Notes under the pieces: model-generated
What the model saw: only the letters and a program-made list of their open reading frames with translations
What the model was told of the DNA's origin: nothing
The model's database searches: none
Shown: piece after piece, positions 11,735 to 46,197 of the stretch
Layout: the number at the start of each line of letters is the position of its first letter
Numbering within the stretch: the stretch's first letter is position 1
Position numbers and translations under genes: made by a program
Assembly (NCBI GenBank): GCA_025603075.1
Contig: MU626301.1
Coordinates: forward strand, 1 to 64,000
DNA from: Neoconidiobolus thromboides FSU 785
Taxonomy: Eukaryota; Fungi; Entomophthoromycota
Length of the DNA stretch: 64,000 nucleotides
Reading direction: 5' to 3'

Positions 11735-12925
11735 ATGATTTTCAATGTCAAATCCGTCTCTCTAACAATCTTAGGACTTGTGACTTTCATCACCAGTCAA
11801 GATCTACCATTCTGCAAAACAGAAGATATTAGGGTTCGTAAAAATATTAAAGATCTAAGTGATGATCAATTAGAACGTTATTTTGGTGCAGTAAAGAAAT
11901 TAAATAGTGCTCCAAGACCCAATGTATGGGATAATTTTACTAGAATGCACGTTGATTACTTCCCACAGGTACATAACACTCAATTCTTTTTAGTATGGCA
12001 TCGTTATTTTTTGTATTTTATGGAAAAAGAATTACAAAAAATTGATCCTTCAGTTACTATTCCATACTGGGATTGGACTGTTGATAGCGAGGAGCCTAAT
12101 AATGATTCCATTTATAGTGATAAATATTTTGGAAAAGTAAATGGTAACGATAGATGTATTAATAGTGGGCCATTTAAAGATTTTAAAGTCTTAGATTTGT
12201 ATAGTCCAAATGGAGATGAAATTTGTTTAAGACGCAATAAAATATTTACCCAACAAGTAACTGGCGGACCTGAAATGGAAAATCTCTATTTAAATAGTGC
12301 CCCTATTGGTCAATTTTCTATAGATCTTGAAGGTGTACCACATAGTCGTATTCACAATGGTATTGGTGGGGATTTTGCTACCGGCGTTTCACCTAGTAAC
12401 CCTATCTTTTATTCTCACCATGCTTTTGTTGATAAATTATGGTTTGATTACCAAATGCGTTATCCTGAAACTATGGATGAATATGCTTTAAATCGTCGTA
12501 CTCCAGTTGCTCCTTGGGGTTTTCCAGTTCTTCAAGGAATTGATACTTCAGATCGTCTATGCTATGTTTATAAACAAGAACATTTCTCATGGACCACACA
12601 AGATATATCTTCTCGTTCTGCTTTCATACCTGATTTTACACCAGAACCATATACAGTACCATCCAGCGTTACCACAATTGAAGAATTAGTTAAACATGAT
12701 GTTGCTTTTGTTACTAGAAATTTTGAGTTAGTTGATATTAACATTCCTAAAGCTTTAGTAAATAATCCATCTTTACTTTCTTCTGCTCCTGGGGAACCAC
12801 CAGTCAAATTAATAGATGTAGAATTCATTGCAAAAATGAAATTGAACTATTCAAATATTCGCGAAAATGAGTTACGTGAATTAGAATTTAAAAATTTTAT
12901 GAAAGAAATTGGGAGTGTTCAATAA
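11735..12925 (+). CDS. Secreted tyrosinase / type-3 dicopper oxidase, intronless
   Basis: Signal-peptide-like N-terminus; CuA H-x7-H-x8-H (MHVDYFPQVHNTQFFLVWHR); PYWDW; CuB PHSRIH...PSNPIFYSHHAFVD; YVY motif followed by a C-terminal extension. Confidence 0.93.
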   Translation: MIFNVKSVSLTILGLVTFITSQDLPFCKTEDIRVRKNIKDLSDDQLERYFGAVKKLNSAPRPNVWDNFTRMHVDYFPQVHNTQFFLVWHRYFLYFMEKELQKIDPSVTIPYWDWTVDSEEPNNDSIYSDKYFGKVNGNDRCINSGPFKDFKVLDLYSPNGDEICLRRNKIFTQQVTGGPEMENLYLNSAPIGQFSIDLEGVPHSRIHNGIGGDFATGVSPSNPIFYSHHAFVDKLWFDYQMRYPETMDEYALNRRTPVAPWGFPVLQGIDTSDRLCYVYKQEHFSWTTQDISSRSAFIPDFTPEPYTVPSSVTTIEELVKHDVAFVTRNFELVDINIPKALVNNPSLLSSAPGEPPVKLIDVEFIAKMKLNYSNIRENELRELEFKNFMKEIGSVQ

Positions 12926-13425: not shown

Positions 13426-13528
13426 ATATAGGGATGTCTTTTTTGGCTTCATTTTTTCCATTTTTAACCACTACTTAAGCGGAAAATTCATTAGTAAAAT
13501 TCTTAAACACAAAAATACATCCCCATAT
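13426..13528 (-). mobile_element. MITE family A copy
   Basis: ATATAGGGATGTCTTTTTTGGCTTCATT...AGTAAAATTCTTAAACACAAAAATACATCCCCATAT. Confidence 0.9.
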
Positions 13529-14368
13529 AATACTTTTTAAATTACAGCTGCTGGAGTTTTATTGTGGATCTTGTTAATTAATAATAAAATTTTGCTAAAA
13601 CTATACTAAAACAAAGACTATGCTTCAAACATAATTGAATTTAAAAATTGTCATAAATCAAGTTGTAATAGCGTTATAACTAACTATAGAGATTTAGCTT
13701 AAGAAAAATCTTCAATAAATTAATAAATGAGTAAGTTTAAAAGCTTGATTTGAATTAAAATAAATTTTTCCAATTTTGCTTTTTATCCATTTTCTATTTA
13801 GTACAAAATTTCTAAGAAACTATTAGACAAAACTGATAGAAAACACTTTTGTACAGCTAATCCCAAAATTAAGTAAAAGAGCAGTTATTTTGTAGTACTT
13901 AGTTTGATTTGCAATTTTTACTAAAAACTAGAGCTAGACAAATTTGAACCAAGCTTTTAAACTCATATTTAAATTGCTACTTCATATTTAAAAATTGAAG
14001 CCAAAATAAATTACCCAGATATCAAAAAACGTTTTAACATTAAGGATTATTCACCCTTAATCGAATATAAAGTATTACCAATAAAGCATTCAAAATAAAG
14101 TATATTAATAATTCCATATGCTTCTAGTAGTTGGACATTAAAATTTTTAAACGTGTTATTTACTTAAAATAGCTAAGGCAACAGCCAATGACATCCAAAT
14201 AGCCGAATAAACCTAACAAAAAAAATAAAAAATAAAAAATAAAAAATTTAACAGTTAAAAAAGAAGTTAAAAAAACATCAACTATATCATTATACTAATA
14301 ATATTAAACACTAAACAATAGACCTAACTTTCTTTACCTATTAATTATATTATACATATAAAAATAAA

Positions 14369-15127
14369 ATGATTTTTTATTTATTAGTATCACTGTTATT
14401 TTATATTACACTAGCACAAGCTCATAGTAACCTAAGGTACCCAATACCACGAGGCAACACCAAGTATAGCAGTTATTGTTCTAGAGGTTTAGGCTGTGAG
14501 GGCCCTTGTGACTCTTCAAGATCCGAGTCTGCTTTTCTAAAGCCCTTCTATCCCAAAAAAGTAATAAAACGTGGCGAAAAGATACGCGTTGAATGGCTTC
14601 GTCAAAATCACCCAGGTGGCTTTATAAGATTAGCATTTGTCCCTTTTGATCAATCAGATGACGCTAATGCATTTGATAATAACGTGATCAAGTTTGTATG
14701 TTATGAGACAAATTGTGGAGAAACTGAAAGAGATGGACGTTTAGGCCACCTCAATGGGAGAGGAGATGGATTATGTTCAACTTATGTGACAGTTCCAGAT
14801 AATTTACCAGATGGACCTATCACTATGCAATGGATTTGGTTTGGTGGCGGGATATTCTTTGCTGTTCAAGACACTGGATTTGCAAATTATTATAATTGCG
14901 CAGATATGGAATTGATTGGCGGTAATGAGTTTAATGCGACTCATAAGTATACGGCTTCATTTCAAGGTGGAGATGTTGCAAACATAGACACTAATCAGTG
15001 TAGATATTGGGGCAGAAATAGTGTCCATCAATGTCCAGAAGGCTCAGAGAATGGGGATTCCTGTGGTAGATTGGTGATAAAAAATGGTATACCGGATTAT
15101 CCTAATTTGTTATTTGAGGAAAAATAA
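14369..15127 (+). CDS. Secreted His-brace LPMO-like copper protein, intronless
   Basis: The signal peptide ends at ..LAQA, leaving His as residue 1 (HSNLRYPIPR). A second His lies in WLRQNHPGGF. TMQWIW and YYNCAD match the QWxW and aromatic-x-x-C-A-D end of the LPMO fold. 10 Cys. Confidence 0.8.
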   Translation: MIFYLLVSLLFYITLAQAHSNLRYPIPRGNTKYSSYCSRGLGCEGPCDSSRSESAFLKPFYPKKVIKRGEKIRVEWLRQNHPGGFIRLAFVPFDQSDDANAFDNNVIKFVCYETNCGETERDGRLGHLNGRGDGLCSTYVTVPDNLPDGPITMQWIWFGGGIFFAVQDTGFANYYNCADMELIGGNEFNATHKYTASFQGGDVANIDTNQCRYWGRNSVHQCPEGSENGDSCGRLVIKNGIPDYPNLLFEEK

Positions 15128-15235
15128 AATAATACTATATACTTATTAATATTATTATTGTTTATTATTATGTACTTAAATTTAAAGGTTTTTTTAACTA
15201 AATTATTTTGTTCTTGAAAAAACAAAAATAGGATA

Positions 15236-17360
15236 GAATGAGCTACCAAACAATATTATTTCAGTATCAAGTGATATTGAAGAAACAAAAGCAAGAGCAG
15301 AAAAAACAGAAGTAAAATTGAAGAAAGAATTTATTGATGAAAAGACAAATAAAGATAAGGAAATTGACGTAATTTTGATACAGTCCGCTAAAGTAGAAAA
15401 AGAAGTAGTTGTAGGTAATTTAAATTAATTTAAGCCTTAAATGGATCTGAGGAAAAAAGAAAAAACAAAGAGTTATCCAAATTTTCTGAAACTACTGTAT
15501 ATACGTTTAATTGCCCGGTATACCTGTGTTTGTACCATTATTGTCGAGCTTGTATGCAAAGGGTAGGTATTAGGAATGTATTGATTTGTAAAAGGTGTAA
15601 ATACAGTTATCATATTGCATGTATGAAAAAAAAATTGGTCAATATTTTTGATAGAAGATGGTAATGAAACTATCAATATTGTTTTTCAGCTATAATAAAA
15701 TTAACGATTAGATTGTGTGAATATGGGGATGTTTTTTTACGTTTAAGGATTTTACTAAGAATTTTTCCGCTCAAATAGTGGAAAAAGGTGGAAAAAGTAA
15801 TGAAGCCAAAAAAAAACACTCCCATATTGTGAATTTAAATACAAAATCTCAAGTAACCAAACCTGCTTCTTTTACACCGGGAAATTCGAAAAACATCTTT
15901 CAGGTTCTGGTTGGAAGAAAACATTGGATTTATCTTATAACAAGCTGTACAAGCAATCAAATCATTTATATACTAAAATTGTATTTATTTATTATTCGTT
16001 TTTCTATACATGGAATCAGCCAAACTAATACACATCCTGGTTATTGGATTGTATTAGGTAGTGGTTGCGGATTCGATAGCGATAACTGTCAAGAATTTAT
16101 TTATATAGGACAAGGGGGTTTTGATACCAAAGGTCACAAAATTGAACATCAAAAGCTTACGGGAGCAAATATGGGACTAGCATCAACGTACAACTTCATA
16201 TTAAATGTTCAAGGTTCTGTTGCAATAAATTGGACTAAAAGCTCACCAGTTCGAGTGTTTTGAGGTGGAAGGCTTTATGTTAAATTCCTAAAATATACTC
16301 CAAAAGTGAATATAGATACGATGAGATATATAAACTAGTACAATATTATAAGCTTTAAAATCCATCAAACGGATATAACATTTGGCAATTTGAATTCAAA
16401 AGACATGATATTGAATCTGCTCCATGGATAGAAGAAGGGAAACAATTTATGAAAGAAAATGACATTACATTTGACCAAACAGATCCTATTATACCCAGAA
16501 AACCTACAGCTCCAAGAAAAAGAAAACCTATTATTATGCTAAAGTTTATTCCTCACAAGAATTTAAATCTTGCATTCATACCAGTTGTATTTAATAATGG
16601 CAACAGTAGTACTATAGATAATAACGGAGTTGACATTGATCCTAATAATATTGTGGGAACTATCAATGACTATAATGGTTTTAATGGGACTATGAGAGGT
16701 AGTAATAACAACAATAATACTATAGGAGCTAACAGTAGCTATAATAATAGTGATGTAATTAACAATGGTTACAATGTTGATAATAATAAGCATGGTGTTA
16801 ATATTGTTAATAATAATACATATGATTTTAGTTTTGATAGTATACTCAGATATAATACTTATGATCATAATGCTTATAACCGCAATAGCAAACGTAACAA
16901 TATATTTAATTCAAATGTTAATCTTTTATATAGTAATGGTTTAAGTTTCTCAACAATTGATTCCAACTTGAATCCCTAGGTTAATAATAACACATACAAC
17001 AATGGTATTATAAATAACGATGATATATATAACAATGGTATTATAAATAATAGTATTATATATAATAGTGACACAGTTAGCACTACTAAAAGTGCTAAAT
17101 ACGTGATGCCACTATTACTTGAAGATTTGATCGAATTGGATTAGAATAATCAACTAAAATGGAATCAAACAATGATTAAAGAATTCATAAGCACTGTTCA
17201 AAACACTCTTGCATGTCCATTTTGCTCCTCCTTTTTGAATTATAAGAAAGTAATAAGTACCAGGTGTCATCATTACTCATGTCATTCTTGTTAACTAGAA
17301 ACCTAAAGGTCCAACTTACTACATGTCCTGAGTCTTTATTACCTTTGTATCCCGAGTTAT
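15236..17360 (+). pseudogene. Decayed UHRF1/VIM-like PHD-SRA(YDG)-RING gene
   Basis: PHD at 15542: CRAC..LICKRC..YHIAC, then W/LCEYC after intron splicing and MITE removal. SRA 15880-16440: HGI..YWIVLGSG..D.D....FIYIGQGG...QKLTGANMGLA...PVRVF*G...KYTP..RYDEIYK..W.F.FKR.D..SAPW. Asn-rich linker. RING near 17215-17330: CPFC..CHHYSCHSC..TTCP. Contains in-frame stops and frameshifts. Confidence 0.85.
15721..15827 (+). mobile_element. MITE family A copy inserted in the PHD-coding exon
   Basis: ATATGGGGATGTTTTTTTAC...GTAATGAAGCCAAAAAAAAACACTCCCATAT. Confidence 0.92.
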
Positions 17361-17399
17361 AGAATCACGATTTGGGCTTTACTACAAATTGTAATTATG

Positions 17400-17506
17400 A
17401 TATGAGGATGTGTTTTTGTTTTTAAGAATTTTACTAACAAATTTTCCGTTTAAATAGTGCTTAAAAAATGGAAAAGTAATGAAGTTAAAAAAAACACTCC
17501 CATTAT
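17400..17506 (+). mobile_element. MITE family A copy
   Basis: ATATGAGGATGTG...TTTAAGAATTTTACTAACAA...AAATAGTGCTTAAAAAATGGAAAAGTAATGAAG...CACTCCCAT. Confidence 0.9.
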
Positions 17507-17723
17507 AGAGAAAGAAAGTTAATGAAATCAAGCTGTTATTTTTCCAAGATTTTAAAGTTATTGTCGTCATATATGTAAAAAATAGTATATAATTATTAGC
17601 GTCTTTATAAAGCTTCAAATAAGACTGCTTCATCGGCATCTATTTCATATTTGAATTCTAATGAACTGAAAAAATTCCTAAAAAATAAATTAATGCCTAA
17701 AATAATAATAATTTACACAAGTT

Positions 17724-19106
17724 TTACTTTGGAAAATAGTTTGAACTTTGGCCAAATGAATAAAATAATGTGACATTTTCATTCAGTTTTATTTCATTTT
17801 TAATTGTTTGATCAAAATAGACAGCCTCTTTATTAGGCGCCTTATCAATAATCATCTGCATCAGCTTAATATAACTTTTACTATTCAAATTAAAGTGTGT
17901 GAATTGAATAAACTGTAAATTTAGTAAATCTAAATGGATATCCAAGCTTTCAATTTCTTTAGCATTAAATAAATGACTACAATTAGACAGATGTAGCCAC
18001 CTTAAGCTTGGCAAACATAAAGCCAGCCACTCCAAACAATATTTTTTGATTTTGACTCCTTTCAATTCAATGTGTTTCAATCGAAATAATATGGGTACCT
18101 CTTTAAATATTTTGTCATCAAATATGCAGTCACTTAATGACAGTGCGGACAATAACTTTAATTCAGTAACCAATTTTACTAAAAAATCATTATCTAAGTT
18201 GGCTTGATAAAGCGCTAGCAGTTTTAAATGTTTTAATAAGAATAAGCTGTTATCAATTTGTCTATTGAAATAGGGTCGCATATTTAGTTTTACCAATGGG
18301 CTTTTCCAATCTTTTAAAATATCTTGATTAATTGCTACACGACTCTCATAGCTTGTTTCAGGACTAAAATTTAAAGCCTCAAGGTTAGGAAAACTATTAC
18401 TATCAATCAATTGAAACTCCTCATCTTCTATTTCATTAAATATTAATATTTCCGATAAGGATAAATGTAACAAATTATCCATTTTAATCTTATTCAATGT
18501 TTGTACATGTCCTAAATAAAATTTCCCATACAACTCCAGCCATTTTAAACTCTGCAGTTTGTGTATGGTATGTATTAACTCATGGTTGATGTTACTTACA
18601 TTTAAATATAAGTATGTTAGGTTTGTTAAACATGTTAATGGCTTTAACAGCTCATTTAATATGGTTGTAAACCCTATAAAGGCGCAATCTAACTTCAGTA
18701 TCTCTAGTTTAGTAAACAAAGTAAAATCAAAGTATTCAGGCTCAATCGCAAAGTCATCATCTTTCCAACAGAAGCTTTTAATATTTAGTAAATAAGTAAC
18801 AATACTTTGAAATGACTCGATATTAATAGGCCCTGAAAGCTGTAAGTGTTCAATTGATGGGCAATGCCTTATGATTTCTCCAAGTGAACGTGTTGAAAAG
18901 TAGGTGTTAAATTTTAAAATTTTGATATACTTTCCACAAGTATTCAAGTATGGTGGTATTGAACTAGAATCAAAATCTACTGTCTTCCAAAACTTTCTTT
19001 TTGTTTCAAGGCGTATATATTGATTCAGCTGATGGTATATAACCTTTTCTTTAGCTGGTAAATACGAGTATATTTTCCAATGTATAAAGTAAGGTAGTAT
19101 ATCCAT
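17724..19106 (-). CDS. F-box/leucine-rich-repeat (RNI-like) protein, intronless
   Basis: The likely ATG at 19106 gives an F-box-like start (MDILPYFIHWKIYSYLP), followed by many LxxLxL repeats (LEILKLD, LTYLYLN, LKWLELY, LRWLHLS). Confidence 0.8.
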   Translation of the reverse strand: MDILPYFIHWKIYSYLPAKEKVIYHQLNQYIRLETKRKFWKTVDFDSSSIPPYLNTCGKYIKILKFNTYFSTRSLGEIIRHCPSIEHLQLSGPINIESFQSIVTYLLNIKSFCWKDDDFAIEPEYFDFTLFTKLEILKLDCAFIGFTTILNELLKPLTCLTNLTYLYLNVSNINHELIHTIHKLQSLKWLELYGKFYLGHVQTLNKIKMDNLLHLSLSEILIFNEIEDEEFQLIDSNSFPNLEALNFSPETSYESRVAINQDILKDWKSPLVKLNMRPYFNRQIDNSLFLLKHLKLLALYQANLDNDFLVKLVTELKLLSALSLSDCIFDDKIFKEVPILFRLKHIELKGVKIKKYCLEWLALCLPSLRWLHLSNCSHLFNAKEIESLDIHLDLLNLQFIQFTHFNLNSKSYIKLMQMIIDKAPNKEAVYFDQTIKNEIKLNENVTLFYSFGQSSNYFPK

Positions 19107-19282
19107 AATCAAATAATAAAAATAAATGAAAAATATAAAAAATGTCAAATTAGAAAAATCAAAAATTTTGATTTTTTTTTATCTCTATTTTCATTCGTCA
19201 AGCTCTTGACCCAATAAAATTTAAGCATTACTTGAATAAAAATTAAAAGCTCTGAAATCATTTAACTTATCTTTATAATCTA

Positions 19283-22200
19283 ATGACAGCTACAAAAAGA
19301 GGTAGAGGACGTGGTAGAGGTCGTGGAAGAGGAAAATCAAGCTCATCTCAGGAATCTGAAAACAATTCGACACAGAACAATGTCAGTGAGCTAAAGGCTG
19401 AAACCGAGTCGAGTAACTTAACCGCAGCTGCTTCACCAAAATTGGAAACAGTGATGGAGGATGTAGGTCCAAACGGGGATCAAAAGGAGAAGGATAAAGA
19501 AGTAAAGGCTATTATGAAGGAAAAAGAAGAAAGTGAAGACGAAGAAAATGAGGTTGAAATCAATAAAAACAATAAACGAATCTCTGTAAAAAAAGAAAAA
19601 AAAGTATATACAACTGCACTTCCAAAACATATAGATTCTGCTGAGATTGAATTTTCAACATCCAACTTAGAGGAAGGAATAGACTCTAGCATAGTAGAGA
19701 TAGCAGAAAGTGAATGGTTACATAAAGAAAGTGAGGTTAAAGGAAAAAGAAAGAAAGAAAAAAAATTTGATAACAAAAAAGTAGACAAATTATTTTCTAA
19801 AGTGATAGAAAGTGGAAGTATTGATGCTAAAAAGGTAGCTTCTTTGGAGTTTGAAGCTTGTCTTGAGAAAGTAAGTTTTTTAAATGTTGAGTCAAATTTT
19901 TATTAAAATTTTTAAAGTTTTTATGGCCCAATTATGTACCAGCTACAAGCTCAAACGCTCATATTTTATTGATGATTCTAATTATTAACCAAAAATTAAC
20001 AGATCAAGCCGCTTTATCGCCTTGGGGTAAGTAATTTACAATTGATTTAAATGAGACTAAAACATAAATAGAATTACTTGAAGCAGATCCGAAAAAGTAT
20101 TCTGAATTGTTCTATAAAGCCATGGCTTTGAATCTTTACGACGCTAATACAAAGGATAAAAAGTATATGAAAAATTTACCTAAATTAGTTTATTTTCAAG
20201 TTAAAATTGCCTTGTTGAGGTTTTTTACGTTTTCTTTTCAAAGTTTAGATAACTCTTTGGTGCGTGAACAATGTTTAAAGTAATTTATTTTTTAATTTAA
20301 CTTGTCATCTTAATTCAAGTATAGATTAACAACAATCTCCATCTGGCACAATCTTTGTAGTGAAGCAAGGAGAGAAGAAGAGATTGCCAAATCAGCTCAG
20401 CTCAAAAGGCTTTGGAAGCATAGCGAGAAAAAGTTTAATTCGAAAGGTAATTTTGCAAATTTTGCAAATTTTTATGCTAAACTGTTTTTTAGACGAAGAA
20501 GAGAAGAAAAACTTAATCAAAGATCGTACTTTTCTTTCAGATTTGGTAAAGTTGTTTGTTAAAAGCTTATATTCGATTGATCCAAGCGAAGGTTATGCTG
20601 TAGATGAAGAAGAAGAAGCATTAATACTTTATTGTGAAAGGATGATGGAGTTTTTAATTGATTTGATTTCGCAATTACCAACTAGAAGATTTTTTAATAC
20701 TTTATTAAAAGACCATTATTTATTAAATTATTGCAAAGAATCTCCACTTACAAAGTCAGTTATCAAAGGGTAAGTATAATGTTGTAATTTACTATTATAA
20801 TATATGCTAATTTTATTTTTAGTCAAAAATTCAATCAATTATTAGCTGATTTTGAATTTTACACGCATTTTGAAATCAATGATTTTACTGGTCAAAGCTT
20901 AAACAAAGATCTAGTAACAGAAACACTTTACAAAGATGTTCATCAATTTGTTTTAATTTGCTTCAAGCATTTCGAAGAAGAGTTGAAAAGTTTGATATTG
21001 AGTCATGTATCTGCGCTTACTAATAGAGATGTTTTACTAAAACATTTAAGATTATTATCAATAGAAGACTTAATTAAACTATGTGGCTATCTTAATATGC
21101 GCACGGAACCTATTACTTTAATAGAAAGTGAAAAGGAAGATTATTATAGTAAGCAATTTTTATTAAATTGTTTGGCATTACGTTATGAGAAAAGAAAATC
21201 GCAGTTGGATTTAATAAACTCGTACCCTTTATTCCCTAACGAAAGTGCAATATTTGATCAAAGTATTATAGATAATCAATTTTATAATGGTGAGTTTCCT
21301 TTAGCTTTACCTAAACTCAACCTTCAATTTCTTACCTTACATGATTATTTAATACGTAACTTCCAATTATTCCGATTGGATGCTTATTACGAGATTAGAC
21401 AAGATATTGAAGATGCCATAAAAAGATTATCCCCCAGATACATACCTTCTGAAAATGCTACTGCTTTTTCAGGTTGGGCTAGAATGGCTTGTGAAATTAA
21501 TAGACTTTCTATTACAGATATTAAAAAGCCAAAATTAGGTCAAATCACCCCCTCTAGGGTTATAGCTGACATACAACTAGATTTGGGCAGATATACAGAA
21601 TCAATCCGAAATGAATGGAAATCATTAAAGCAGCATGATATTTTATTTTTATTAACAATTCAAGCTACAACTGATAGCAGTAAGCCATACATTGAGGGAA
21701 GTTCATTTCAAGATCATTTTGGTATTACAACCGTACGTGGGTGTGAAGTAATAGATATTTTAGATGATGAAGGTAAGCCCGTGAATGAAGTAGGTAAACC
21801 AAGATTAGAAGATCCAAATGCTGTAATGCAAGCACCTTTAAGAACAATTCGAGTAGATTTAGATCCTAATCAATACCAAAATGATCTTTCATTATCAAAT
21901 GGTCATACAATTTACCAAAGTTTTAATATCGTATTAAGACGTAAACCTAAAGATAACAATTTCAAAGCTGTTTCACAAACTATACGCGATCTTATGCAAA
22001 GTGAATTGATTGTACCTGATTGGCTGAAGAGTATTGTCTTAGGTTATGGGGATCCAAGTGGAGCCCATTATAGTAACTTTGAATTAAATAATGATGAGTT
22101 TTACTTTAATGATACCTTTATTGATTTTGATCATATAAAAGAGAGTTTCCCTAATACAAGCATTGTAGCTTTAAATGAAAATATGATACCACCCTTTGTA

Positions 22201-44158: not shown

Positions 44159-44265
44159 ATATGGGGATGTTTTTTTTGGCTTCATTACTTTTTCCATTTT
44201 TTAAGCGCTATTTGAGTGCAAAAATTGTTAGTAAAATTCTTAAACATAAAAATACATTCCCATAT
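44159..44265 (-). mobile_element. MITE family A copy (well conserved)
   Basis: ATATGGGGATGTTTTTTTTGGCTTCATTACTTTTTCCATTTTTTAAGCGCTATTTGAG...TTAAACATAAAAATACATTCCCATAT. Confidence 0.92.
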
Positions 44266-45345: not shown

Positions 45346-45451
45346 ATATGGGGATGTATTTTTCTGTTTAAGAATTTTACTAACAATTTTTGCACTCAAA
45401 TAGCGCTTAAAATATAGAAAAATTTCTAAACAGAAAAACACATCCCCATAT
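45346..45451 (+). mobile_element. MITE family A copy with TIR extended to about 32 bp
   Basis: Left ATATGGGGATGTATTTTTCTGTTTAAGAATTT; the right end AAATTTCTAAACAGAAAAACACATCCCCATAT is its near-complement. Confidence 0.92.
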
Positions 45452-46092: not shown

Positions 46093-46197
46093 ATATGGGG
46101 ATGTATTTTTGTGTTTAAGAATTTTACTAATGATTTTCCACGTAAATAGCGCTTAAAAACGGAAAAAATAATGAAGTTAAAAAAAACATTCCCATAT
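46093..46197 (+). mobile_element. MITE family A copy (reference orientation)
   Basis: ATATGGGGATGTATTTTTGTGTTTAAGAATTTTACTAA...AAATAGCGCTTAAAAACGGAAAAAATAATGAAGTTAAAAAAAACATTCCCATAT. Confidence 0.92.

Follow-up and report, generated by a model that had tools for sequence, protein, structure and literature searches.

Fragmentary open reading frames in a stretch of Neoconidiobolus thromboides DNA (26% GC) raise the question of whether they conceal a gene for a methyl-DNA reader and, if so, whether that gene can still make its product. We found a colinear relic of a PHD, SRA and RING gene on the + strand at 15434-17362 of the window (the whole 64-kb stretch that was analyzed), which we regard, with a probability of roughly 0.9, as a non-processed pseudogene of an Entomophthoromycotina UHRF1-type gene. 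A preliminary description of the sequence had proposed a dead UHRF1-type methyl-DNA reader in an early-diverging fungus, and the domains, relatives and lesions set out below support it; the UHRF1 order of PHD, SRA and RING is recovered on the + strand by Pfam, by a family profile and by tblastn. The locus is otherwise an ordinary pseudogene, which adds a dead member to an already known family. Its parts are as follows:

15237..15413, + strand: possible N-terminal exon, Lys/Glu-rich, with no profile match and uncertain membership in the gene
15434..15660, + strand: PHD exon, with a pre-PHD Cys pair and the finger up to a split Trp codon (C-x2-C...C-x2-C-x4-H-x2-C); Pfam PHD and family profile
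15661..15711, + strand: intron A (GTAATG...TTAG, 51 nt), which splits the PHD Trp codon in phase 2; comparison with the Entomophthora muscae gene
15712..15946, + strand: exon 2, from the last PHD knuckle, (W)-L-C-E-Y-C, through a short linker to the SRA start (YTGKF...GSGW...LSYNK), with the MITE inside it
15724..15826, + strand: MITE of 101 nt (15724-15824) plus a duplicated TA, with inverted ends TGGGGATGT / ACACTCCCA
15947..15995, + strand: putative intron B relic, 49 nt, with a GT start, a TACTAAA branch-like motif and a T-rich tract; borders approximate
15996..16480, + strand: SRA/YDG core; Pfam, family profile and tblastn
16481..17114, + strand: linker of largely low-complexity, Asn-rich sequence, interrupted in frame by TAG at 16977-16979
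17115..17362, + strand: pre-RING helix and RING finger, with a terminal TAG at 17360-17362; family profile

A profile made from 24 intact UHRF1-type proteins was searched against 3,318 six-frame pieces of the 64-kb window, and only five of these match at E < 0.001, all on the + strand at the relic and in domain order, which excludes chance. The whole relic, with an X put at each break, scores 198 bits against this profile, and the X-joined domains score 21 (PHD), 147 (SRA) and 36 bits (pre-RING plus RING; E 5e-10). In a Pfam scan of the stop-free + strand pieces, which the preliminary description had put forward as a check on all three domains, the PHD finger (24.2 bits, E 3.4e-5, cutoff 24, on 15434-15661) and SAD_SRA (27.9 bits, E 2.2e-6, on the single piece 15721-16260) were recovered, the latter under its gathering score of 30.7 because the SRA domain is split. 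The check failed for the RING piece, which has no significant match to the Pfam RING models (zf-RING_5, E 0.17); the family profile recognizes its first half (E 1.5e-5) and places a conserved D..N..W helix ahead of this C-terminal RING. The same profile gives E 6e-8 for the PHD piece and E 4e-19, 8e-4 and 2.5e-8 for the three SRA pieces. The pieces 16264-16335, 16284-16355 and 17246-17359 and those of the N-terminal and linker regions have no Pfam match. A tblastn search of the window with the E. muscae protein returned a colinear series of five segments:

15527-15652, + strand: PHD, 55% identity to E. muscae over 42 residues
15873-15959, + strand: SRA start
15997-16356, + strand: SRA core
16296-16547, + strand: SRA end
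17115-17318, + strand: pre-RING and RING

The preliminary description had called the copy full-length, which does not hold in the animal sense: nothing in the 64-kb window matches profile positions 1-136, which were scanned for the UBL and tandem Tudor domains, the upstream gene lies only ~300 nt from the relic, and the E. muscae relative P0004 has PHD, SRA and RING only.

The exon structure is read against the E. muscae gene, in which one intron interrupts the PHD Trp codon in phase 2 (TG|GTATGA...AAG|G) and the other comes directly before RPSIAGIHG. Intron A is identical to the first of these in place and phase, and the intron B relic lies within one codon of the second; with these two positions kept, the relic is a genomic copy and not a retrocopy. 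The fragmentary frames that the preliminary description had noted are thus only in part a matter of damage: the stops and frameshifts are damage, and two of the interruptions are conserved intron positions. The TAA TGA right after the PHD Trp (15662-15667) was accordingly rejected as a lesion, as it falls inside intron A, and so was the change of frame at 15947-15996, where E. muscae has an intron. A 29-nt intron at 15661-15689 was also considered and rejected in favor of the 51-nt one. We read 15947-15995 as a probable intron with a lost acceptor, as it has no AG, and the codon split by intron A is now TG|A, a stop. Introns of ~50 nt are normal locally, as seen in the F-box neighbor, whose intron at 17677-17726 is removed in RNA (an F-box/LRR gene on the minus strand, with a GenBank model at 17605-19106). 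The Lys/Glu-rich stretch at 15237-15413 has no in-frame start codon and joins the PHD exon out of frame, and its link to the relic is one that we infer.

One disruption is the MITE, which interrupts the C-E-Y-C motif within its Tyr codon, divides the PHD finger at its last zinc knuckle, shifts the frame and adds a stop at 15776. Once it and one TA are removed, the sequence reads TGT GAA TAT TGT, and with intron A also taken out the PHD end becomes W-L-C-E-Y-C, which is the W-x-C-x2-C knuckle of the family. The element has at least 13 matches in the 64-kb window, with copies of ~100 nt and inverted ends TGGGGATGT...ACATCCCCA at the following places:

15724-15824: the copy in the relic
17403-17502
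44161-44262
13428-13525
46096-46194
45349-45448
others in the same window

The inspected copies start with TGGGGATGT or something very near it; the majority have a form of CCCCA at the end, and the majority also have TA flanks. Such TA flanks and inverted ends are typical of Tc1/mariner-derived elements, to which this family would by these features belong. A 7-bp target-site duplication (TGTGAAT) was considered for the copy in the relic and rejected in view of the TA duplication at most other inspected copies. The summed word depth of the MITE is very high in all the sequencing runs compared below.

Beyond the MITE, the lesions that the preliminary description had singled out are all present. 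The invariant Arg of PVRVxR in the SRA domain is replaced by TGA at 16261-16263; the frameshift placed near 16310 is a -1 shift in the A-run 16302-16305 (about 16303); and the RING region has a TAG at 17142-17144 and a TAA with a frameshift at 17291-17294. To these are added a TAA at 16356-16358 within the SRA core, the TAG in the Asn-rich linker and the change of the last RING zinc ligand from Cys to Ser (TCT, 17333-17335). Among the residues invariant in the family, 35 of 49 are kept and 14 lost, and half of the near-invariant ones (16/32) are kept. In the columns that we put at the 5mC pocket, one Tyr has become Cys and a Thr has become Ile, with the Asp and a second Tyr kept; these columns would be those of human Y466, D469, Y478 and T479, so that the lost invariant residues presumably include some of the pocket lining. 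No open frame able to give the protein is left, and with the MITE, at least five stops, two frameshifts and a lost acceptor, the N. thromboides copy is no longer able to encode a reader. Of the changes that we reconstruct at conserved sites, most are G>A and C>T (with the last three rows of the table of sites excluded). This excess is not diagnostic of deamination of 5mC or of a RIP-like process as opposed to ordinary AT-biased decay, because conserved residues use GC-rich codons in a genome of 26% GC. The observed/expected ratio of CpG is ~0.6 in genes and spacers alike and gives no specific sign of past methylation.

A phmmer search with the SRA piece against 1.84 billion representatives gave 20 matches, the best of which are UBL/PHD-SRA-RING proteins of early-diverging fungi (e.g., Entophlyctis, Spiromyces, Massospora, E. 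muscae 'uhrf1', Linnemannia and Kickxella). A phylogenetic tree places the relic in a clade with E. muscae and Massospora cicadina (100% SH-aLRT), on an end branch whose length, 4.47, is about eight times the median (0.53), and, because this branch is long, its exact place within the Entomophthorales clade is unsure. Between the relic and the E. muscae locus, only the UHRF1-type gene itself matches. Proteins of this type are annotated in Basidiobolus, Rhizophagus, Ambispora, Geosiphon, Podila, Allomyces, chytrids and Entomophthorales, and the presence or absence of UHRF1 and its co-evolution with DNMT1 have been surveyed in 180 eukaryotes (PMC10538959); the view that such machinery is poorly described in early-diverging fungi was thus overstated. 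We also noted an apparently intact SRA plus RING gene beside RPN2 and Gar1 in a Logan contig of another eukaryote (L002, 7001-8144, run SRR5823420). The relic could, in principle, be a decayed extra paralogue, with another UHRF1-type copy still at work and no loss of a pathway implied, and two copies do occur in relatives, namely Massospora (P0003, P0037) and Entophlyctis. We consider this improbable, since the N. thromboides proteome is in the database and yet no UHRF1-type protein of this species is found among the protein-search matches. With Entomophthorales UHRF1 queries against annotated proteins, the matches include no intact protein of this type from either N. thromboides or Conidiobolus coronatus, and the sole N. 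thromboides protein matched is K502DRAFT_364285, which lies at the relic locus.

In GenBank, where record MU626301.1 of assembly GCA_025603075.1 has the same coordinates as the window, two models named "hypothetical protein" overlie portions of the relic. The first, K502DRAFT_364285 (362 aa), joins an LPMO-like ORF (14369-15073) to 15237-15413, used as exon 2, and to about 16057-16263, where it ends at the TGA of the relic SRA; it is a chimera of a gene for a secreted His-brace LPMO-like protein and two pseudogene fragments. An exact look-up of the LPMO-like ORF gave no match, because the GenBank model differs. The second model is a 176-aa ORF at 16449-16979, inside the relic. The public annotation at this locus can thus be corrected to one chimeric model and one mere ORF within a pseudogene. 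Elsewhere in the window, an intronless tyrosinase at 11735-12925 has, after Entomophthoromycotina and Syncephalis, its next-best matches in Streptomyces MelC2 (31-35% identity over 54-58% of the query), and by these matches the family may be of old bacterial origin.

We compared Logan contigs from four runs (DNA runs X1, X2 and X4, and RNA run X3) with the window over 14300-19300. In the RNA run, the relic is covered by colinear, unspliced contigs at 15339-15722 (depth 3.6), which retains intron A, and 15789-17475 (depth 12.4), which retains intron B. The depth is 67 at the F-box neighbor, with its 50-nt intron removed, and 10 at the LPMO-like neighbor, and the spacers 15128-15338 and 19094-19300 are essentially empty. 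On the basis of these contigs, the relic is probably weakly transcribed and not processed, and their low depth and lack of splicing would fit leaky transcription of a dead gene; they could also reflect a low-level transcript with an RNA-level role, or DNA carry-over. That the relic is kept for a role of its RNA or of truncated proteins, with the 176-aa ORF and the 362-aa model as products, would agree with the existence of the GenBank models and with an RNA depth near that of the LPMO-like neighbor (12 vs 10). We nevertheless hold it to be very unlikely: the first donor of the 362-aa model (15073) is read through by RNA contig 14358-15127, which leaves that splice with no support, the 176-aa ORF has no family match and consists largely of Asn-rich, low-complexity sequence, and a halved SRA domain would be unable to fold as one.

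The DNA runs bear on whether the lesions are real. Over 15799-17442, run X1, which may be the source, shows 0 differences; run X2, from a separate study, has 1 substitution and 0 gaps; and run X4, which carries a third label, differs by 5 substitutions and by 18 nt inserted behind 17175. Together with the RNA contigs of X3 (0 differences), all of them keep the stops and frameshifts from 15799 on, and, because these contigs carry them, the lesions in that part are not assembly errors. The long contigs begin inside the MITE, at 15799 (DNA) or 15789 (RNA), and leave its left junction unspanned. Among the differences, X4 reads GG at 16309-16310 and thereby encodes the near-invariant Gly that is replaced by Glu in the window, and its pre-RING insertion (TTAAAGAATACGATAATT) is an in-frame near-duplication of adjacent sequence. 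Run X2 also has a minor second contig over 15239-15407, in the putative N-terminal exon (depth ~10 of 31, with four small indels), which is either an allele or a close paralogue. An intact gene whose stops and frameshifts are errors of assembly or sequencing is scarcely credible: two of the frameshifts do lie in or beside short homopolymer runs, but X2 and X4, which come from separate studies, and the RNA contigs reproduce every lesion over 15799-17442, and the stops hit conserved codons beside many missense losses. We give equally little credence to a functional gene from which splicing or recoding takes out the apparent lesions, since, although two of them are indeed intron positions and ~50-nt introns are normal, the other stops fall where the alignment to intact relatives runs residue by residue (at R291, in the loop after YKLV.YW and in the RING), the RNA contigs are colinear with the DNA and have no joints, the MITE separates two paired zinc ligands, removal of intron A yields TG|A and an AG is missing from intron B.

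Reading the relic as a non-processed pseudogene, we can ask what was lost and when. In animal UHRF1, the SRA domain binds hemimethylated CpG and flips out the 5-methylcytosine, the PHD finger reads the histone H3 tail, and the RING ubiquitinates H3, which recruits and activates DNMT1. What we infer of the ancestral function comes solely from homology to this protein: the ancestral SRA would have bound hemimethylated CpG with its 5-methylcytosine flipped out, the PHD finger would have been a reader of the H3 tail, and H3 ubiquitination by the RING would have recruited and activated a DNMT1-type maintenance methyltransferase. To our knowledge, no fungal PHD-SRA-RING protein of the Entomophthorales clade has been functionally tested. 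As the X1, X2 and X4 isolates share the lesions from 15799 on, the gene died before they diverged. The lineage appears to be losing its DNA-methylation maintenance system, of which the relic is a trace. We tentatively posit, at slightly less than even odds, that the relic is one of several UHRF1-type and DNMT1/Dim-2-type fossils in this genome, the whole CG-methylation maintenance module having been lost so recently that every part is still readable. Were this so, one could work out, in a fungus, when and in what order reader and writer were lost together. The joint loss of DNMT1 and UHRF1 is a pattern known across eukaryotes (PMC10538959); it is usually seen as presence and absence, and a readable relic offers a datable trace of it in the Conidiobolus lineage. 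The prediction that follows is little or no maintained CG methylation in N. thromboides. No literature on 5mC in either Conidiobolus or Neoconidiobolus was found. In Zoopagomycota, 5mC has been reported to be scarce (PMC11258239).

Among known systems, the UHRF1-type proteins of Entomophthorales have ~36-41% identity to the relic over the SRA and 55% over the PHD. E. muscae KAJ9064824/KAJ9064825, annotated as 'E3 ubiquitin-protein ligase uhrf1', share its PHD-SRA-RING architecture without UBL or tandem Tudor, and the E. muscae gene shares its intron positions and phase at the PHD Trp and before RPSIAGIHG, whereas the models of M. cicadina (KAI0216826 and the 381-aa P0037) show SRA and RING only. 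The relic differs from these proteins in being broken by a MITE, stops and frameshifts and in having lost 14 of the 49 invariant residues. The DNMT1 cofactor of animals, UHRF1 (UBL-TTD-PHD-SRA-RING), has the same order of PHD, SRA and RING, and its SRA motifs YTGxGG, PVRVxR, RYDGxYK and RRDD..PxPW align with those of the relic, which differs in being non-functional and in having no detectable UBL or tandem Tudor. The plant VIM/ORTHRUS proteins (PHD-RING-SRA-RING) resemble it in an SRA with a C-terminal RING and appear as distant database matches, scoring far below fungal and animal proteins in the protein search; they have a RING between PHD and SRA, where the relic has a linker of ~25 codons without one, so that the VIM half of the initial UHRF1/VIM assignment does not stand. 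The Uhrf1 homologue of Cryptococcus neoformans is, like the ancestor of the relic, a fungal SRA-domain protein, in its case a partner of a maintenance methyltransferase; it is without PHD and RING, both of which the N. thromboides relic had. Functional study in fungi has, according to a 2026 review (PMC13297926), been confined to this stripped-down homologue, which assists Dnmt5 (PMC13297926; bioRxiv 10.1101/149385).
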